Source: Adineta vaga (lineage: Eukaryota > Animalia > Rotifera). From it: a DNA stretch of 64,000 nucleotides. Location of the stretch: contig CP075493.1 of the NCBI GenBank assembly GCA_021613535.1, positions 9,548,001-9,612,000 of the forward strand. Reading direction: 5' to 3'. The translations under genes were made by a program, and so were the position numbers. Below, one piece after another: positions 36,539 through 47,023 of the stretch (position 1 is the stretch's first letter; each line of letters starts with the position of its first letter). Under the pieces are notes generated by a model. The model did no database searches. It was given only the letters and a program-made list of their open reading frames with translations, and had not been told where the DNA came from.

Positions 36539-37773
36539 TTATTTAGCATACGATGCTTGTCCAGTTTGAACTAAGTATCGCTTAAATTCATCATAGAGAA
36601 CAAGGACAAGTGATGAACCAACACTTCGATATAAATTTGATAAGTTGCCTTTGAAGAAAGCAGTTAAACCTTCATTAGCAGCAATCTTTCGAGCACAATC
36701 CGTTGTTCCTCTATAGATAATATCTCCACGACCACTTTGCATCATCAAACGACTAGAAACGAAAACAAAATGTGAACTCTTATCTATTATTCAAACAACC
36801 TACCGTCGAATAGTATCAAGTGGATAGGCAAGAAATTCAGATGATGATGTGACAAATTGTGCGAAAAGAAAGCGATATAAAATGCTTGGATTTGGATTAT
36901 CACCGAAGATGAATTTTTTTCCAGCATCATAACCACCAAAATAGAATGCACGGTAGACAAAAATACCGGCCACACTAATAGCAAAACCTCGATAGAGACC
37001 TAGCGAAGAAAAAGATCCATTGATAAGAGTAATTCAATCTAAAAGCAATAGTAAGATATATTACCTTGTATGCCATCAGCTTTGTATATTTTAACAAGAC
37101 AATCATTCATGCCTTTAAATTGTCGTTCACTAACTGATTTTCCAATATCGACACCAAGACGTGTACGAGCAAAATCCAATGGATAGACAAATAGTAAACC
37201 TGTTGCTCCAGCCATACCACCTGCAAATAAATTACCAGCGAAAAATTTATATGGATTTAAAGCAGGATTGTAATTCGCAAACATTCGTTGATAACGTTCT
37301 TTGAAAGCGAAATTTAAAGCTTGCTAAATAGAATCAAATTCATTGATAGATTGTTTCTCGAAAACTAGTAGAACAAAATTACCGTTGGAAAATAACGCAA
37401 AACATTGGCCCAATTGCCTCGCCAGAGTGATATAGGTCCTTCTTCTTTAATACATCGAACGAGACAATCACCAAATCCTTTATATTTCTGTCCTGCAGCA
37501 ATCTTTTGATTGACATCTTGGGTTTGAAGAAGAAGTTTGACACGTTCAAGTGGTGCAACGGCTGTTTTTGAAATAGCTCCCTACAATTCATACGTTTATT
37601 ATTCGAAGAATGATTTTTAATAGGTAATACATACAGCTAAAAGAAGAAGCAAAATGGTGAAGATTAAATCGAGCTAAGAAGAAAAACAAACCTGTTCCAC
37701 CAGCAAGAAAATCGATTAAAATATCTTTTGTCGTTGTTGCTGGTCTTTGTGGTACACCGGTTGGGCCGCCCAT
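36539..37773 (-). CDS. Mitochondrial ADP/ATP carrier (SLC25 ANT family), divergent
   Basis: [67 protein letters not shown]. Frame requires a 2-nt exon at 37635-37636. Confidence 0.93.
37635..37636 (-). other. 2-nt micro-exon (CT) of the ADP/ATP carrier gene
   Basis: Minus strand reads cttcttttag|CT|gtatgt. Flanking introns are 55 nt (37691-37637) and 54 nt (37634-37581). It restores the frame G+CT = Ala, giving AGGTAGAISKT. Confidence 0.85.
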
Positions 37774-38240
37774 ATCGATCTAAAGTAAAAGATAAAATGA
37801 AGCCGTTTGTCCTTTAAACGATCTTTTTTCGCGTTAGATTCCGATTGTTTATCGATGGTCGACAACGACAACAAATGTGCAAATAGATGTAGACACTCCT
37901 TACTTCTGAAGAGAAGAAAAACACAAAAATAGCTTTATTGAAGTAACCAATCCGAACGAACAATACCGCTTTCTTTTTTTTTCAATACATGAACGACAGA
38001 GATCGCTAATATATAAAGGTATTCTAATAGCGCATATAATATTTTCATTCGTAAAATTGTCGTTATGTTCAACATTATTCTAAATATTTTCTCAAAAAAA
38101 AAAGAATAAATTTCTCAGAATTTGAAGAACAAAATTTTCCGATCGCATCATTCATATACTGAATTGTGCAATTAATATGACATGGTAACATGAAGAATAA
38201 GAGAAAAACACTATACATTCTTTTATTCTTCTTTGTGGGT

Positions 38241-38445
38241 AAAACTGAAAAGTATTACGCATACTGTGTAACATGTGTCAAAAGGACTTGAAATGATAGA
38301 AAAAGGCGGTTGAAGTGCTTTTCAATTTAGATATGGGGAAAAATCCAAATGATCGAATCACTAAAAGTGAAACAGAAAATTCCAACTAGTAGTATGACAT
38401 CCGTCGATATAAAAGGCTGTGGTGTAACTACATACAAACAGTCAC
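38241..38445 (+). promoter_or_regulatory. Putative promoter of the Ubl-RBR/USP cluster: TATA box, Inr-like element, kB-like and IRF-E-like motifs
   Basis: TATAAAA 38408-38414 with CAGT about 30 nt downstream, GGGGAAAAATCC 38335-38346, AAAAGTGAAACAGAAAA 38363-38379, AAAACTGAAAAGT 38241-38253. Motif matches only. Confidence 0.45.
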
Positions 38446-38506
38446 TTTCTCCAACTAAATCACATATAACTACAGTTAAGTTTACACTACACATCAAACG
38501 TAGATC

Positions 38507-39505
38507 ATGTCGGGTATTATCAATGTTTTATTCTCTACCATGAAAGGTAGTAAACATCTTGGTCAACTGAGGGATGGTTATACTGTTGCTGATATTAGAA
38601 AATTAGTGAAAGAAAAATTTGGTTCAGATAGTTTTCGTCTTGTGGTTAATGGTCAAGAAATTCAAGACAATGATCCAGCTAAATTTGAAGAATTAAAAAA
38701 ATCTATTAAAAACAATACAGTCATTTATGTATGTCAACGAATGGATGGTGGATCGGGTATGGTTGATATAGCTTCCCATAAGGCTACGATTCTTGTCGAT
38801 CTTCAAGATGAATTACGTAAAGTTCCAACACAGAAAACCAATTCTGAATGTATGATTTGTACGGAAGAGAAAAACTGTATTAAAATTTGTTGCAGCTCAA
38901 TCATTTGTAAAGAATGTTTTCCAAATTATTTCATTCATACTGATTATAAAATTTCTTGCTTAACGTGTAATCAAGTTTTACCACCGGAAACGGTTTTTGT
39001 TACACAACAATTTATTCAATCACTTGTTCAATTAGATGAAACAACATTATTGGCCCGAAATATTGATTTTCAAATATGTACTTGTGGAGCATTTTGTATT
39101 AACAGTACGATGTATGCAAGACAACAGTGTAGCAATTGTCAACGATGGTTATGTTTCTTTTGTAATACCGATTGGGATGAACGAGGGAAGAAAATGAAAA
39201 ATGAAAAATATTCATGTCGAGTCAATTGTTTTTGGGAAACTAAAATTACTTATCAATTAGTTACATTAGAATATAATAAAAATATGAAAACACCAAATCG
39301 ACGATGTTGTCCAAAATGTTTCGAATGCGGTTCATATGATTTAAAATGCAAATATCATCGATGCAAATGTGGTCATACATTTTGCTTCATTTGTCTAAAG
39401 TCTAAAGCAGAATGTATACGTGATTTTAAATCGGAATATAATCGGCCATGTGGTGCAGTAGCACAACAAACATACACAATATTTCCACGTCTTTGTCATC
39501 AATAA
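38507..39505 (+). CDS. Ubiquitin-like domain (ending RMDGG) fused to RBR (RING1-IBR-RING2) E3 ligase; intronless
   Basis: aa 1-82 are beta-grasp-like (TVADIRKLV...FRLVVNGQEI...VIYVCQRMDGG). Then RING1 CMIC...CC..ICKEC...CLTC, IBR ICTCGAFC...QCSNC...CFFC..DW, RING2 RCCPKC...KCKYHRCKCGHTFCFICL. Confidence 0.88.
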   Translation: MSGIINVLFSTMKGSKHLGQLRDGYTVADIRKLVKEKFGSDSFRLVVNGQEIQDNDPAKFEELKKSIKNNTVIYVCQRMDGGSGMVDIASHKATILVDLQDELRKVPTQKTNSECMICTEEKNCIKICCSSIICKECFPNYFIHTDYKISCLTCNQVLPPETVFVTQQFIQSLVQLDETTLLARNIDFQICTCGAFCINSTMYARQQCSNCQRWLCFFCNTDWDERGKKMKNEKYSCRVNCFWETKITYQLVTLEYNKNMKTPNRRCCPKCFECGSYDLKCKYHRCKCGHTFCFICLKSKAECIRDFKSEYNRPCGAVAQQTYTIFPRLCHQ

Positions 39506-39594
39506 AAATACTTCTCTTTTTGTTGTTAATAAATATGTGATATTTATCTATTTAATAAACCAAACACGAAGTATTCCTATGCCTATCGTTTTAG

Positions 39595-41014
39595 ATGAAC
39601 AGTTGTTTTCCAATGCGATTCAAAAAGAAAAAATCCAAGGCAAAACATTCGCCATTAGTTCAAGAACCTCGATTCAAATCTTCAGATGGAAACCGATCAT
39701 CAACAAAGCATCAAAATACAATATCAGTTCACTTAGATAAAAGTATAGTTAATCTGACGTCAAACTCTTCGGAACAAGCAGGTCTTACTAAGTTACTATC
39801 GAAGTGCAATCGACCATTGAAAAATAGAATATTACCAGGTATGTGAACAAATATTTAGATTTGTATGTATATTTTTGGTTGACTTTTTAGAACTTAATCA
39901 GAAGGATGATGTATCGAAGAAGCCTATCGAGAGACATGAAACAATCAATAGAGATGCTCAAGATAGTCCCAGCACATTGATCACACACGAAATTCAAATG
40001 ATACAACTAGACACACGTGGGAGTTTGTCATCGAAACAAAAACTACCTCCAATATCTCGTTCATCGTCATCTTCTCGATCAGATCATCAAAATGTATCGA
40101 CACGTCATTCGTTAGGTGTTTGTGGTCTGAAAAATATTGGAAATACTTGTTACATAAACAGCGCTCTACAGTGCTTAAATAGTATACCTGCTTTTGTTGA
40201 ATGGGCTAAGCAACAACGAACATCTATGACGCAAAGAAATATAATCGATGTTTATGCTTTATTAGTACAAAAAATGTGGTCCGATCGGCAGCAATGTGTT
40301 AATCCTGAAGAATTGAAGAATTATGTCAGTTACGTAGCTCCCATTTTTTCTAACTATGATCAGAAAGATGCACATGAATTTATGAATTCACTTCTTAATA
40401 CATTACAAGCAGCTGATTCAACTTCGTTTCTTACCAATCATTTTCAAATTCATACTCAATCAGAGACTACCGGTAAGAAATGTGAACATATAGATTTCAC
40501 CAATGAAACAACAACATTTCTTCCACTTTCAATTCCTGAATTAAAACCAAATGATCACATCAGACTTTCTCTAGTAGATCTCATTCGAGATTTCTGTCAG
40601 GAAGACACATTAGATGGCGATTATTATTGTCAAACTTGTCAAAAATATCAAGAAGCACGGCATAAAATTACAATTATTCAACCATTACCATCTACTCTTA
40701 TTATTCAACTAAAACGATTTCCATTTGATAACACCAGTAGAAAAATTGATACATTGATACGATTTGAATTCAAATATCAAAATCTACTATCACATGATGA
40801 TCAATACGAACTATCTGCTATTTTACTACATAGTGGAAATCTTGCTTGTGGACATTATACAGCATTGGCACGCAATTACGTCACTAAACGATGGTATCAA
40901 TTCGACGATAGTTATATAAGAGAAATTGATACAGATGATGTCTTGCTAGTTTTTAATACACGACGAGCATATGTGCTTATCTATTTGAGAACTATAGAAA
41001 GTGAAATATTTTAA
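39595..41014 (+). CDS. USP-family deubiquitinase A (peptidase C19)
   Basis: Exon 39595-39838 splices in phase 1 to 39891. Cys box GLKNIGNTCYINSALQCL, QKDAHEFM, LIIQLKRF, His box HSGNLACGHYTA, WYQFDDS, AYVLIY. Confidence 0.9.
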
Positions 41015-41036
41015 TTCTGTCAAACTTCATTTTTAG

Positions 41037-42440
41037 ATGAATAATTTACTTAGGTCAAACGAACGACAACTCGTAGTACGAAATGACAAGGAAGGAAATA
41101 TTTACGATTGTATCTACGATTCAAACTCACACAAGCTAATTCTTCATCTTTCCATACCACCTGTTTCAATCTTATATGAATGGAATGATTTTGGTAAGTT
41201 TACTGATTAGAAACTATGTATATTCTATGACAGATTTTAATTTTCATTAGATCTTCGTTATCTACGTTTAATTATTAAATCACTAACCGTTGATTCGTCG
41301 GAAGAATGCAATAATCAAGAAACAAGTGATATAAATACAGCTCAATCATCTTCTACCTCTTTCATGTCTCATGCAGCAGTACCTGCTGATGTTATTCTTC
41401 TTATCTTTATCCGCTACCTACAATTAATAAATGTTATTTCATGGTCATCACCAACGTGTATCTCTGATCAAGTATATCAACCACCAAAGCAGAATGGAAA
41501 GAATCATTCGATACCAGCTCCTTGTCCAAGAAAAAAACAGAAATTTGAACCTGGTCTATGTGGTTTAGCTAATATTGGTAATACATGTTTTATGAATAGT
41601 GCAATTCAATGTTTAAGCAATATTCCACAACTAACGGAATGGGCTAGTAAATACACATCATCGAATAATCAAACACCTGTTATGACGGCATATACATCAT
41701 TGATTAAATCCATGTGGTCAGGAGAAAAGAAATGCGTTATTCCAAGTGAAATCAAACAATGTGTAAGTCAACATGCTCCAATCTTTTCTGATTATGCTCA
41801 AAAAGATTCACATGAATTTATGAATTCTCTCCTTAATGCACTTCAATCTGAATTTGAAAAGAATCGTTCATCTCAAGAACAATCATCCATTGTAACTGAT
41901 CTTTTTTGTATTCGAACAAAATCAGAAGTAACCTGTTTGAAATGTAAAACTCCTGATTCAACTGAAGAACTTACTTATTGTTTACCATTACCATTTGAAG
42001 AAGAATCGAAATTATCTTTGGATAAGATATTAAAAGATTTCTTGAAAGAAGAACTACTCGATGGACAGTATTACTGTTCGACATGTGAAGATCTTGGATC
42101 AGCTAAACAGAAGACGAGTATATGTCATCCATTACCATCAGTAATCATTATTCAACTAAAACGATTTACTTTCGATGAAACTAATGAAAAATTATCGACA
42201 TTGGTAGATTATCCACTTGTTGATTGGCAAGTGGATGCTAATGATAATTCATTATATGATCTTGTTGCTGTTTCAATGCATTTTGGTAATTTAAAACGAG
42301 GACATTATACAACCTATGCACGATTGAATGCTTCTGATCAATGGTATCATTTTAATGATTCTTCTTTTGAGCGTGTTATTGATATGAATTGTCTTGTTAA
42401 TCGAAATGCTTATGTTTTAGTCTATTTAAAAAAGAATTAA
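41037..42440 (+). CDS. USP-family deubiquitinase B (peptidase C19)
   Basis: Open frame from ATG 41037, intron 41194-41250, then in frame into ORF 41364. Motifs GLANIGNTCFMNSAIQCL, QKDSHEFM, CLKC/CSTC zinc pair, GHYTT, WYHFNDS. Start codon uncertain. Confidence 0.88.
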
Positions 42441-42499
42441 AAAACCACATTAATTGTTCATTTCAGATTTGTAAATTCTCAGCTATTGTTTTTTTACTA

Positions 42500-44666
42500 A
42501 TGAATACCCATCAGACTAATTACATCAATCGATCGACGTCATCCGGATATTCTTACTTAGGAAAGTCAGACGATCATCGAACATCATTGTCCGATGTACC
42601 AAGATTAACCACGATCTCAAAAACTATAGCTTTTCGAGTGTGTCGAATCTATCGTAATCCTGCTGGAACAAGATACATAAGAATGCCAGACAATTCGACA
42701 CTTGACAAACTAAAACAAGAAATATGCATACAACTTGATTCATCGATGAAATCGACAGATATGACGCTGACGATCTTTGATGAAGATAAATGTGCATGGA
42801 TACCAATTGATGAAACAATTGCTGATAAAACAATTGCCGATTTTCAATTTCCTTCTTACCCTATCGTGAATATTGAAAAGCGTGAAGAAACAAGCAGAAC
42901 AAAGTTAGACTTAACGTTGAAGCTGTGTAGACGACCAATGAATAAATCTGATTTTATCTATCTTGAACTATATTCAACAATCACCATCAATCAATTGAAA
43001 GATGAAGCACGAAAACGCGTCACAACTACGAAAACAAATTATCTCTACTTATGGAGAGATGAGAATTGGATTAAATTAGAAACAGATCTTAATGATATCA
43101 CTCTTGCTGAGTTGCATATTATTCAATATACAATCATTAGTTTCGAGCCAGCAACTGATCTCGTTCCTGGTGTATGTGGTCTGACAAATTTAGGTAATAC
43201 TTGTTTTATGAATAGTGCTCTTCAGTGTTTAAGTAATATACCTGAATTAAATGAGAAGATTCTATCATTTGGTAAAGAAATGAATGCGCCAATTATTGGT
43301 GCTTACTCATCATTAATCAAAACCATGTGGTTAGATAAATGTGCTGTCACTACACCGTCATCTCTGCTTTTAAATATTCGTGAAAGTCTTCCATGTTTTC
43401 CTCGTTATAAACAGCATGATGCTCAAGAATTTATGAATTATTTCTTACATCTAATACATCAAGAGCTAACCAATGAAACAACATTAGTTACTCAATTGTT
43501 TTATGGCCGAATTCGTTCTAGTGTTATATGCTTTAGGTGGATGTGGTTCTAACGAAACTACGGAGGAGAATATTAGTTTTCTTCCATTACCAGTTGAAGA
43601 CCATACCAAGCAATATAATATTCTTTATCTTCGAAGTAATGGTGAACAAAGCTTAGAATCTTTTCAAAGTTCTGCAACTACCATCGAAGAATTAGAGGAA
43701 TCATTCATTCGACATTCTAAATTAGATTTATTCACTCAACGAATTGTAGTCGCTAGAATAATTAACAATAGAATTATAGAAACGTATCGTTCTTATACAT
43801 CAATCAACGCTACTACCAAACATCAGTTGGTCTTCATTGAACTTCCAGAAAAGACTGTTGAACAAAAATATATCGAATTTCGGTTTCTTGATCGAAAAAC
43901 ACTTGTACCGTTTCGACCACCAGTCTATATCGTTTGTCCATTGTTTGATTGTCGTTATTCAGACATATCGGAACAAATCAAACAGATTCAGGATCACTTC
44001 TGTGCTAAAATTGGTACGCCATTGAATGCTGTTGACCATATCTATTGGACTAATTATGAAGATCGATCCGATCGAATAAAATCAGAAGTGTATAAAAACG
44101 ATCCTTTTCTATTTATGCATCATATTGCCATTGAAATGGATTCTTTATGGATTGAAAAGTATCAAAATTATTACAATTTCGATCGTTCAACTCATAAACC
44201 GTCTTTAACTAATCTACTCGCCGATTTTTTTCGAGAAGAACAACTAGATGGTGACTACTATTGTTCAAAATGTCTCACTCTTCAAAAAGCTAAACAAAAA
44301 GCAGATTTAGTTTTACCATTACCACATGTTCTAATCATTCAATTAAAACGATTTACCTATGAAGCACATTCCGATAAAAAAATCAACACATACATCGATT
44401 TTCCACTCAAAGATCTCGATCTTACTCCATATGTTATTCAAAATAGTGAAACAAAGAAAAATATATCAGCATTGTACGATCTTGTTGCAGTATCTAATCA
44501 TACAGGTACACTCTTTGGTGGACACTATACTACATACGCAAAAAATCATCGAAATCACACATGGTATTGCTTCAATGATGAAATAATTCGTGAAATTACA
44601 AATGAAAGAGATGTTATAACAGAAAATGCTTATATTCTTGTCTACACAAAACGATTTGTTGAATGA
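42500..44666 (+). CDS. USP-family deubiquitinase C (USP4/11/15-like: N-terminal Ubl-like repeats, insertion in catalytic domain); 1-nt frameshift at ~43533
   Basis: ORF 42500-43552 has GLTNLGNTCFMNSALQCL and QHDAQEFM. ORF 43503-44666 has CSKC, LIIQLKRF, HTGTLFGGHYTT, WYCFNDE and AYILVY. Removing one T from 43532-43534 gives VICLGGCG and one continuous ORF. Confidence 0.88.
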
Positions 44667-47023
44667 TGGATGTTATTTTTAAATAAAAGAATAAACATGT
44701 TAAATAAACAATTGGATTGTGAATATGTATTTTTGTAACTATAATAGAAACTGAAAAATGCGTACACATGTATATTTAGATGACTATGACAAAAAAATGT
44801 TTTTTTGCATCTCAAAACAGCGTACTTTTGTGAAAAACAAAACGAATACAGACCATTTGAAAAGTGAATTCAGAGATTTTACTTCAGAATAAATATCTTT
44901 GTATTTTGGCTTCTTCTATCAACGAACCGAACCATGTTTTCGCATGGGTAAATATTCTTACTAATCAAGTTGTAAAGTCGAAGAATAGTTATCTAAAAAC
45001 GAGATTAAAAGAATGAATGAATTGATGAGTTTTTTTCTTCTGTTATAGCTCATTGTATATTGTTATTATTCTTTTGTCTTGAGCTAGAAACCTTTTTGCT
45101 AATTAAGTTTTTAGAAATTGGCATTCGTCAGAGAATTAGATGAAACCTTTTCTTTTGCTTAATAATGTTCGCCTTGACATTTCAATAGATGAAACCACTA
45201 TAAATGTTGCTAGTTACATAAACCCACACATTTGTTTCAAGTGAAATTTCATTTTTTTCTTGACGTCAATTGAGAAACAATAGGTTATTTATAACATATT
45301 TTCTTTGATTGAGGTGTTCTTTTCGCTCTCTGAAAATAACAACATCTGTTTGGTTTTGTTAGTGAATCATTGGAATAACAATATGCTTGATTGTTGTGCA
45401 AGTATATTTCATTGACGTCGATATATATGTGTACATATTTAAGTTGGTTAAGAAGAAGAAAGCAATAAAGATTATAGTACAATGGTAGAAAGTAATAGTG
45501 TGTCGTACGAATTTCTGTTCGATTGTTATGTAGGCGATGAGAAAAGTGGAGGAGTATTTCTGTGATGCGGTTATAATCTTACTATACTATAAAATCCTTT
45601 TCCTATTCACCATTTGAATATAATTGAAGTTAGGTGAATTTTGAAAACACATCTATATAACAACGACATCTATTTTGAGAATATCTGATTTTATCTACTG
45701 AACCTCTGACAATTGCGCTGTCTGTTTGTCTGTGTCTCTCTCTTCCCTCGTTGTGTTTGTCTTGCGTTTGCATACCGTTGATGACGAATGAGCATTTGTT
45801 TAAACAAGGTGTATATATTGACACCGGACAATCTTCTTCATTATCTTTTCGTCGTTTATTTTTTTTATACCGTATGAACTTTATGTTTTGAAATACTATT
45901 TATTTCTTTTTCTTTCGTTATATGATGATCGTAAATTTTCGAATAAAAACCAGGTTAGAAAAAAACTTTGCATGTTTTCTCTTCATTATATTTGAACTTT
46001 GACTTTTCAGGTCGTTTTTTCAATGCCTGACAAACATTATTTAGACAGCAGGCGCTCTTAATATCAGATGAAGAAAAATTTTCTAATTGTGAGGAAGAAA
46101 AAAATCTATATTTTATGTGAAGAATATTTTTTTCCTATTTATGATAGTAAGAAGGAAAAAAAAGCGGAATACTTGTTAACTGTAACAAAATTTTCTGGTC
46201 AATATTATAATTTTTTTGTTAATAATATGAAGTAAATGACGCAAGCGAATAGTTTTTTTTTTCTTAAGGTTTCTAAACTTTCGATCACTGACATGTGACA
46301 AAGCGGTCGTGTGTAATACGTCTGTATAGAAAAATATCGTAAAATATAGCCGTTATCGTTGACGACAGACTTATTAAGTAAACATAATTATAGTTTCCTT
46401 TTGATGGTGAGAAAAAGTATTCTGTTGTGCGTTCGAATAGAACGGTAGTGAACGCATAGTGTAAAAGTATGAATGGATAACCTATAAACTCAATCCGTTT
46501 TCTTTTTGTTAAAGGTATGACAAAACTTCTTGTAGATATCGATTAGTAATCGAAAGATAAATAGAAATATCTTGATATGTCACCTATATTTTTTTTCACA
46601 TTTAATATTGACTCGTTTTCTTATGATTAATAGTGAGTTTGTCTGTATTTCTATTTACAAATAATGCGTTTTTCTCTTCTTAAAATCAAATGTACGTTTT
46701 TTGAAAAAATACAAACTCGACAAAACAACATGTGAGTAATAGAAGAAACTTTACGTGCGTTTAGTGCGTTCTTTTTTTCCTGCTTTGAGGGCACGCATGC
46801 TGAAGAACAGTATAGTAATAAAATAATATGGGGTGACTTGAATGTCTAATGCTGATTGGTGGTGTTCTATCCGCACTCTTCTGTCGGTATGAAAAAATCA
46901 TCAAAATAAAATGTAAGACAAGTAGTATTTTCTTTTCGTACATTCATCTAAAATATTTGTCATTTCTTTCATTATATGTCGAAAACAAATCTAATGTAAA
47001 TTTTCTATTTTAGATTTTGTTGA

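Follow-up and report, generated by a model that had tools for sequence, protein, structure and literature searches.

Does the run of four closely packed genes at positions 38408-44708 of the window analyzed here (64,000 nucleotides of Adineta vaga contig CP075493.1) represent an operon, and, if so, what joins an E3 ubiquitin ligase to the three ubiquitin-directed proteases that follow it on the same (+) strand? We know of no case in which the genes for an animal ligase and its opposing proteases are inherited as a unit; the papers searched yielded no RBR-USP cluster and no characterized rotifer operon, although trans-splicing in rotifers has been described. As judged from sequence, the unit comprises a ligase that carries its own ubiquitin-like (Ubl) tag and three proteases of the tag-removing kind, in an operon-like arrangement, and the interpretation that we favor, with moderate confidence, is that bdelloids keep this writer/eraser module as a spliced-leader (SL) operon. 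The features on which the argument depends are as follows.

38408-38414, + strand: TATA box of the unit, 32 nt before the A at 38440 of an Inr-like site (38439-38442)
38507-39505, + strand: Ubl-RBR E3 ligase gene, intronless, 332 aa, assigned from the ORF and from profile, structure and Atlas searches, expressed; Ubl at about residues 1-82, RING1 about 115-154, IBR about 191-241, Rcat about 268-315
38738-38752, + strand: Ubl tail R78-M79-D80-G81-G82, in register with ubiquitin R72-L73-R74-G75-G76; predicted USP cleavage after G82
39347-39349, + strand: Cys281, catalytic position of Rcat, invariant in alignment A2 and aligned with the coral Rcat Cys
39506-39594, + strand: junction 1, with polyA signals at 39528 and 39554, a pyrimidine tract and an acceptor AG adjoining the USP1 ATG
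39595-41014, + strand: USP1 gene, 455 aa, intron 39839-39890 (spliced in 3 RNA runs); N-terminal Cys and basic run
41015-41036, + strand: junction 2, 22 nt, without AATAAA, acceptor AG adjoining the USP2 ATG
41037-42440, + strand: USP2 gene, 448 aa, intron 41194-41250 (spliced in 3 RNA runs)
42441-42499, + strand: junction 3, without AATAAA, acceptor AG at 42465-42466 conserved in 6 loci
42500-44666, + strand: USP3 gene, intronless, 721 aa, with an N-terminal Ubl-like region and an insert that splits the catalytic domain
44682-44708, + strand: terminal polyA signals, with no acceptor after the last gene

A Pfam search with the single ligase sequence came out blank; profile comparison matched RING (residues 100-155), IBR (186-223) and, over the Rcat region, RING2 of parkin and ARIH1 (250-298). 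The predicted structure gave parkin and ARIH1/2 as fold matches, and all Atlas neighbors are IBR/RBR proteins, so that the RING1, IBR and Rcat zinc domains occur in the order that defines the RBR family. The earlier note on this DNA had placed a Cys at the catalytic position of RING2, and it is indeed there, as Cys281. RBR ligases usually, though not always, have a His at position +2 from the catalytic Cys; here, this place is taken by Tyr283 and the His is displaced to 284 (+3), yielding C-K-Y-H instead of C-x-H. By its domain order and catalytic-position Cys, the protein is an RBR E3, with thioester transfer predicted. Homology extends over the full length of an Acropora protein annotated as ‘polyubiquitin/ARIH1-like’ (hhalign 99.6%), which likewise has a di-Gly tail. 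The nearest named non-rotifer relatives come from Mortierellaceae, Heterostelium, Petalomonas and Amoeba, and the tree places the ligase among sequences of fungi, amoebae and a euglenid (97/96), but an AU test of the alternative grouping, with the coral-type sequences, gave p = 0.06; a horizontal origin of the gene is no more than suggested.

All three downstream genes retain the Cys box, the His box and the Asp and match PF00443 above the cut-off, USP3 having been scanned as two pieces on account of an assembly break; they are bona fide USPs (peptidase C19), in agreement with the original reading. The break in USP3, on which the earlier note is silent, is a frameshift caused by one extra base at 43532, which yields ORFs 42500-43552 and 43503-44666. 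Given that this base is absent from the RNA contigs of all three runs that cover it, the frameshift is an assembly error and USP3 is intact; its orthologs are single frames of 696-726 aa, and a pseudogene is ruled out. The best solved relatives of the cassette USPs are USP15, USP11 and USP4. The 26 RBR-linked USP domains all fall into a single clade (99/92), separate from the USP4/15 pair, which bears DUSP, and a subclade of 20 sequences (100/98) matches the RBR clade that holds the A. vaga window gene (100/97); the tree of the N-terminal half of the USPs resolved no grouping. USP1 and USP2 share a Q-K-D motif in the switching loop that was not seen in unlinked USPs, and an Atlas search with the USP3 N-terminus produced only weak Ubl leads (<0.8).

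The layout of the locus is that of an operon: the stop-to-ATG gaps are 89, 22 and 59 bp, and acceptor-like sites ending at 39594, 41036, 42466 and 42482 precede the downstream starts, both as claimed previously. The further claim, of a promoter before the first gene alone, holds for the TATA box at 38408-38414, with the qualification that a TATA-like word also lies at 40913, 124 nt before USP2, where it is not conserved. Across orthologous loci, such a word occurs within 200 nt upstream of gene 1 in 6 of 6 cases and before downstream genes in 2 of 18 windows. An unpaired acceptor (YAG/AT) is found 22-132 nt past each upstream stop at 18 of 18 junctions in six loci, and the extended form TTTYAG/AT at 17 of these, compared with 2 of 92 control ORF ends and a chance expectation of about 0.8-1.8% of windows; no acceptor follows the last gene. 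The 18 junctions share a common ancestry, yet their gaps have diverged in length and in the remaining sequence.

The RNA evidence consists of assembled contigs from A. vaga runs, which cannot show transcription starts. All four genes are expressed, as separate contigs of unequal mean depth; the ligase contig ends at 39574, inside junction 1, and one contig extends about 137 nt upstream of 38401, that is, beyond the TATA box. No read-through contig or joint crosses a gap in the assembled A. vaga runs, and a single long mature mRNA was rejected on this ground. The rotifer spliced leader ends in GAG (PMC3795323), so a leader-bearing read would match the genome from the AG on. USP3 contigs from two studies begin exactly at the acceptor AG 42465-42466, preceded by 2-3 unmatched letters, as a spliced leader would leave; among the assembled contigs, no such starts were found at the USP1 and USP2 acceptors, and the leader letters themselves were not seen.

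Comparison with other bdelloids provides the principal line of evidence. The order RBR>USP>USP>USP, the recurrence of which had been set beforehand as a check, appears in five other bdelloid assemblies; the same order and strand are found in A. ricciae, A. steineri, an ENA metagenome contig, Rotaria sp. Silwood2, R. sordida and Didymodactylos carnosus, with different flanks around the A. steineri and D. carnosus cassettes. A USP lies within about 2.5 kb of the ligase gene at 13 of the 13 intact bdelloid RBR loci read, and the linkage holds down to 36-41% RBR identity, in layouts that include head-to-head, tail-to-tail and USP-first arrangements. The tight junctions are missing, and the gaps wide, in D. 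carnosus and at paralogous loci; A. vaga has on C2 a USP1-like/USP3-like pair without a ligase, and no USP was found within 10 kb of the Mortierella ligase gene. Because the linkage survives divergent and convergent layouts, co-transcription appears to be one way of keeping the pair rather than its essence. A conserved functional pairing of ligase and USPs is very strongly indicated by these comparisons, and it is likely that the A. vaga unit itself is an operon.

One competitor of the operon is a tandem array of four independently promoted, singly trans-spliced genes, with USP promoters inside the upstream coding sequences and linkage kept by inherited inertia. The unbridged gaps and differing depths are what such an array would produce, trans-splicing is common among bdelloid genes (a share of 60% is quoted in PMC4824033), and linked paralogs in opposite orientation cannot be operons. 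We nevertheless consider it unlikely: gaps of 22-65 nt without AATAAA are kept across two genera, the conserved TATA box stands before gene 1 only, and the linkage outlasts rearrangement in animals whose gene order is scrambled at depth (PMC12460157). Several public gene models, from R. sordida, Rotaria sp. Silwood1, A. ricciae and D. carnosus, instead use the acceptors in cis to create RBR-USP or USP-USP fusion proteins. These fusions are not supported and seem highly improbable, given that every RBR frame runs in full to a stop of its own and has its own polyA signal, that the donor in these models is a weak one that would interrupt Rcat upstream of Cys281, and that no such joint occurs in the four A. 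vaga runs checked. For the operon-like, trans-spliced structure proposed in the earlier note, the comparison of genomes provides good support and the RNA contigs provide part of it. Its description as a self-contained conjugation/deconjugation module was too strong: the unit encodes neither E1 nor E2, and the combination of Ubl, E1, E2 and JAB protease that characterizes Bil systems gives way, at all loci read, to RBR and USP genes only.

What the proteases might act upon is suggested by the ligase tail, the key feature for the mechanism. Residues 78-85 form a flexible linker in the structure model, and model and alignment together reveal a beta-grasp fold with a di-Gly tail, as in type I Ubl modifiers. 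In 50 relatives less than 60% identical, with a mean Ubl identity of 21%, the tail retains R in 43, L/M/I in 40, and the two G in 45 and 48, and Pro never follows the GG; the Arg that matches ubiquitin R42 is conserved in at least 90% of alignment A1. Position 74 is variable, the ligase having Asp where ubiquitin has R74, and a Gly is lost in a few relatives, including the USP-linked P0045 and Mortierella. USPs read L73, R72 and the terminal di-Gly (PMC10611586). The presence of R-[L/M]-x-G-G in ubiquitin register, with the GG kept while the Ubl drifts, implies that the ligase is probably a USP-cleaved precursor. We regard cleavage after the GG as rather likely; the chances that the linked USPs do most of the cutting are about even, and conjugation of the freed Ubl as a modifier is doubtful.

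That last step would be part of a private Ubl system, in which the freed Ubl is activated by the host E1 and conjugated by its own RBR half, with the USPs serving as maturase and deconjugases, in the manner of ISG15/USP18 or Bil. The E1- and USP-facing equivalents of R42, R72, L73 and the di-Gly are kept while the rest of the Ubl drifts, the USP clade is dedicated and co-inherited, and, speculatively, the Q-K-D motif of USP1 and USP2 could answer the acidic tail residue. Against it, E1 and E2 are absent nearby, an identity of 21% is less than one would expect if a conserved E1 had to recognize the modifier, each ligase molecule would supply a single Ubl and hence little modifier, and position 74 varies, so we consider this system rather improbable. 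The same guarded odds apply to the boldest formulation, a new bdelloid Ubl modifier that co-transcribed, co-evolving USPs set free from its own RBR ligase; this would be both an animal counterpart of bacterial Ubl operons and a coherent rotifer SL operon. Slightly less probable still is an uncut Ubl that, like that of parkin, docks or autoinhibits at ubiquitin-binding sites of the RBR or at the USP S1 site and builds an E3-DUB complex. The parkin Ubl is an uncleaved inhibitor (PMC3940038), parkin is among the best fold matches, and some members have lost a Gly, but docking needs no conserved pair of glycines in a flexible linker, with a small residue other than Pro next in line.

Under the favored SL-operon reading, a single TATA promoter would drive a long pre-mRNA of all four genes, which would be cut and polyadenylated after the ligase gene, with the leader joined to each USP message at the unpaired acceptor that precedes it. 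Junctions 2 and 3 have no AATAAA; there, the 3' end of the preceding message probably lies close to the trans-splice site or at it, on the pattern of tunicate operons. Four separate mRNAs would result, in line with the separate contigs. The ligase would be made as a Ubl-RBR precursor whose R-M-D-G-G tail enters a USP active site, most likely that of a co-inherited USP, and is cut after Gly82, to give a free ubiquitin-like protein and an RBR ligase. From family knowledge, the latter would bind E2 through RING1 and receive ubiquitin on Cys281 by transthiolation, using the ordinary E1 and E2 of the cell; the USPs would process the precursor and reverse or restrain the marks made by the ligase.

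Operons resolved by spliced leaders are known from tunicates (Ciona, Oikopleura), C. elegans (SL1-type), chaetognaths and Hydra (PMC1488885; PMC12460157; PMC3273482). The cassette shares with them co-oriented genes less than about 100 nt apart, acceptors before downstream starts and upstream cistrons often without AATAAA; it differs in its rotifer host, in the functional coupling of a ligase with its proteases and in a linkage that outlives the broken operon layout. The FUBI-eS30 and ubiquitin-ribosomal precursors cut by USP36/USP16 (PMC10611586, PMC8354635) likewise begin with a Ubl that ends in R-[L/M]-x-G-G and is joined to an unrelated partner, and are processed by the USP fold, cleavage being predicted here; in the rotifer, however, the Ubl is joined to an E3 ligase, to which a USP clade of its own is genetically linked. 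The RING1-IBR-Rcat core with its catalytic Cys is common to parkin, ARIH1/2 and uncharacterized Ub-RBR proteins of corals, fish, forams, fungi and amoebae, whereas the rotifer ligase lacks an Ariadne or RING0 domain and has C-K-Y-H and a divergent Ubl missed by Pfam. The USPs are closest to USP15, USP4 and USP11, and USP3 has a split catalytic domain like these, but the three carry no DUSP domain, the insert is absent from USP1 and USP2, and they belong to a separate, nearly intronless bdelloid clade. In BilABCD, in archaeal Ubl-E1-E2-E3-DUB clusters and in ISG15/USP18, a Ubl, a ligation enzyme and a processing protease are inherited or regulated together (PMC11354881), as here, where the USPs are candidate processing enzymes; the rotifer unit differs in the lack of E1/E2, in RBR and USP folds versus JAB and in the fusion of the Ubl to the ligase. 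The pairing resembles the self-contained bacterial tagging kits more than anything described in animals. A role in defense is a tentative proposition, somewhat against the odds. A paper on fungal infection of A. vaga never mentions ubiquitin, and USP and IBR terms are absent from those parts of its supplement that were examined, which bears on the question neither way.

Across bdelloids, duplication and rearrangement have not parted the ligase from the proteases, and because the pair has been kept in this way, likely enzyme-substrate pairs can be named in advance and tested directly. The conserved di-Gly tail points to an uncharacterized class of Ubl-RBR precursors, found also in corals, fungi and amoebae, for which the rotifer cassette supplies candidate processing enzymes. 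For the existence of spliced-leader operons in rotifers, moreover, few comparative cases are as clean as this cassette.

An earlier note had described, from the sequence, four co-oriented genes with gaps of 89, 22 and 59 bp and acceptor-like sites; all of this was borne out on re-reading, and the cassette is real and conserved. It comprises the following features (window positions):

38408-38414: TATA box
38507-39505, plus strand: Ubl-RBR (RING1-IBR-Rcat) E3 ligase
39506-39594: junction 1
39595-41014, plus strand: USP1, a peptidase C19 deubiquitinase, as are USP2 and USP3
41015-41036: junction 2
41037-42440, plus strand: USP2
42441-42499: junction 3
42500-44666, plus strand: USP3

The catalytic motifs claimed for the three USPs are present in each (Cys, His and Asp boxes), their PF00443 scores far exceed the cut-off in a Pfam search, and their closest solved relatives are USP15/11/4. 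The Ubl-RBR ligase, searched alone against Pfam, produced no match; the profile of its family matches RING, IBR, parkin/ARIH1 RING2 and ubiquitin in the expected order, its AlphaFold model (mean pLDDT 86.6) structurally matches parkin, ARIH1/2 and ubiquitin, and its Atlas neighbours are RBR/IBR proteins without exception. The Cys reported at the catalytic position of RING2 is the invariant Cys281, followed two residues later by a Tyr where His is usual. USP3 is split in the assembly by a frameshift near 43532; the base at this position is absent from RNA contigs of three runs, and each USP3 orthologue reads through as one frame (696-726 aa). The frameshift is an assembly flaw, and USP3 is an intact gene of 721 aa. 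In the searches and trees it was represented by its two pieces only.

In seven loci, the USP1 start (window 39595-39640; L024, L019, L025, L022, L044 and L007) encodes 1-2 Cys within residues 1-5 and then a Lys/Arg run, a shared feature that supports this ATG as the true start and might represent a palmitoylated, polybasic membrane anchor. The switching loop reads Q-K-D in USP1 and USP2 orthologues (window 40360-40370 and 41800-41810), and Q-Q-D, Q-H-D, Q-E-D or Q-N-D in unlinked USPs.

Linkage in relatives, proposed earlier as a check, was found: the order RBR-USP-USP-USP recurs in assemblies of Adineta ricciae, A. steineri, Rotaria sp. Silwood2, R. sordida and D. carnosus and in an ENA metagenome contig. 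In the six Adineta/Rotaria-type loci, an acceptor and then AT occur 22-132 nt past the upstream stop at 18/18 junctions (TTTYAG at 17), and the gap lengths and the rest of the gap sequence vary; the background of the acceptor motif is 0.8-1.8% per window and 2/92 control ORF ends. Because the loci share descent, these counts speak for selection on the acceptors rather than 18 independent events. AATAAA precedes the acceptor at junction 1 in every locus; its absence from most instances of junctions 2 and 3 is part of a layout shared with tunicate operons, where upstream cistrons often lack this signal (PMC1488885). The last gene usually has AATAAA, with no such acceptor nearby. The reported restriction of the TATA box to the first gene also holds across the loci, with a TATA-like word before gene 1 in 6/6 and in 2/18 windows, about the chance level, before downstream genes. 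The cassette has an ADP/ATP carrier gene (37000-37775, minus strand) as its head-to-head neighbour; A. ricciae, R. sordida and the ENA contig share this gene, and it is absent at the loci read from A. steineri (L019) and D. carnosus (L033).

All four genes are covered by RNA contigs from four runs in three studies, all of them assembled contigs from which starts, strand and level are not readable. The introns 39839-39890 (USP1) and 41194-41250 (USP2) are spliced in these contigs; the exons were joined only to count frame and stops (one script). No contig or joint crossing a gap was among those listed in the four runs, and at junctions 1 and 3 the bin depths exclude a hidden bridging contig in runs X1 and X9. 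The ligase contig ends at 39574, 15 nt past the second AATAAA and 20 nt short of the USP1 ATG. One contig reaches about 137 nt upstream of 38401, beyond the TATA box, so that some RNA begins further upstream. In two contigs from different studies the match begins at the AG of the USP3 acceptor (42465), with a further 3 and 2 letters outside it that do not align; the remaining listed contig ends have no comparable overhang. Given that the rotifer spliced leader ends in GAG (PMC3795323), a trans-spliced USP3 end would match from exactly this AG, and these starts with foreign letters (the letters themselves are not displayed) hint at trans-splicing.

The RBR-USP pairing is deeper than the operon form. 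A USP lies within about 2.5 kb at 13/13 intact bdelloid RBR loci read, including a second A. vaga copy; with about 20 USP loci found (a lower bound) in the six contigs, 100.8 Mb in all, of the A. vaga genome, chance adjacency would be well under 1% per locus. Among the 13 are also paralogous RBRs of 36-52% identity, USP-linked in head-to-head, tail-to-tail and USP-first layouts. No USP was found near two partial or broken A. vaga RBR copies on contigs C3 and C4 (L010:1158-1652 and L013:1198-1676), one matching Ubl and RING1 only and the other broken by stops and frameshifts, or within 10 kb of the Mortierella ligase locus. On A. vaga contig C2 (L016:1900-5454, near 3.955-3.958 Mb), a USP1-like gene and an intact USP3-like gene form a pair without a ligase, with AATAAA and then acceptors at their junction. 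The linked USP domains form a single clade (99/92; 86 in the C-half tree, not resolved in the N-half tree), outside of which falls the DUSP-bearing USP4/15 pair. A 20-row USP subclade pairs with the RBR clade containing the window gene, and the other six USP rows with more distant RBRs. The three D. carnosus USPs cluster together, so this triplet arose or was homogenised separately.

The Ubl end R78-M79-D80-G81-G82, a flexible linker in the model, registers with ubiquitin R72-L73-R74-G75-G76. Of 50 relatives less than 60% identical, with a mean Ubl identity of 21%, 43 retain the tail Arg, 40 have Leu, Met or Ile next to it, 45 keep the first glycine and 48 the second; in motif matches, the residue following di-Gly is small and never Pro. 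USPs thread substrates by these tail residues, and a narrow channel restricts cleavage to di-Gly (PMC10611586). Taking into account also FUBI-eS30, the nearest known case, we infer that the ligase is probably a cleavable Ubl-RBR precursor. The linked USPs would be the likeliest enzymes to process it and oppose the ligase, a proposition with roughly even chances. Conjugation of the freed Ubl itself appears doubtful: its E1-facing residues are conserved, but position 74 is Asp, Gly is lost in a few relatives, and no E1 or E2 is linked to the cassette, so that the module is not self-contained as the earlier note had it. Elsewhere in A. vaga, L046:4980-5600 and L048:5350-5800 encode a similar divergent Ubl joined to a different Cys-rich domain with a shared G-L-C-L-E-G-x-C motif, the L046 Ubl terminating in a Gly run. 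L047:5200-6000 encodes a tandem pair of such Ubl domains that lack the di-Gly tail. The 584-aa relative P0053, which matches the profile four times, has an RBR part and then another family Ubl, and might be a tandem poly-precursor or a fused gene call.

To the ligase family belong proteins of Mortierellaceae, Heterostelium, Petalomonas, Amoeba and forams; more distant members are coral "polyubiquitin/ARIH1-like" proteins with identical architecture and tail. The bdelloid ligases cluster with fungal, amoebal and euglenid rows (97/96), but the AU test leaves a grouping with animals standing (p = 0.06); horizontal transfer of the ligase is plausible. A conflict-related role would fit the duplication and decay of copies; expression evidence for defence was looked for in the A. 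vaga fungal-infection paper and did not turn up.

All components belong to known classes (SL operons, RBR ligases, USP15-type proteases, Ubl precursors); what sets the cassette apart is a functional coupling that has persisted. It would work like a reduced version of a Bil or ISG15/USP18 kit and, without E1/E2, falls outside the Bil-type systems. The literature searched, which covers few subscription journals, yielded no description of an RBR-USP gene cluster or of a characterised rotifer operon. In the public models P0344, P0345, P0346, P0054 and P0330 and in L024, RBR-USP, USP-USP or USP-GRAM neighbours are fused, a probable consequence of gene finders splicing at the unpaired acceptors. Such false fusions in bdelloid annotations may conceal many operons.
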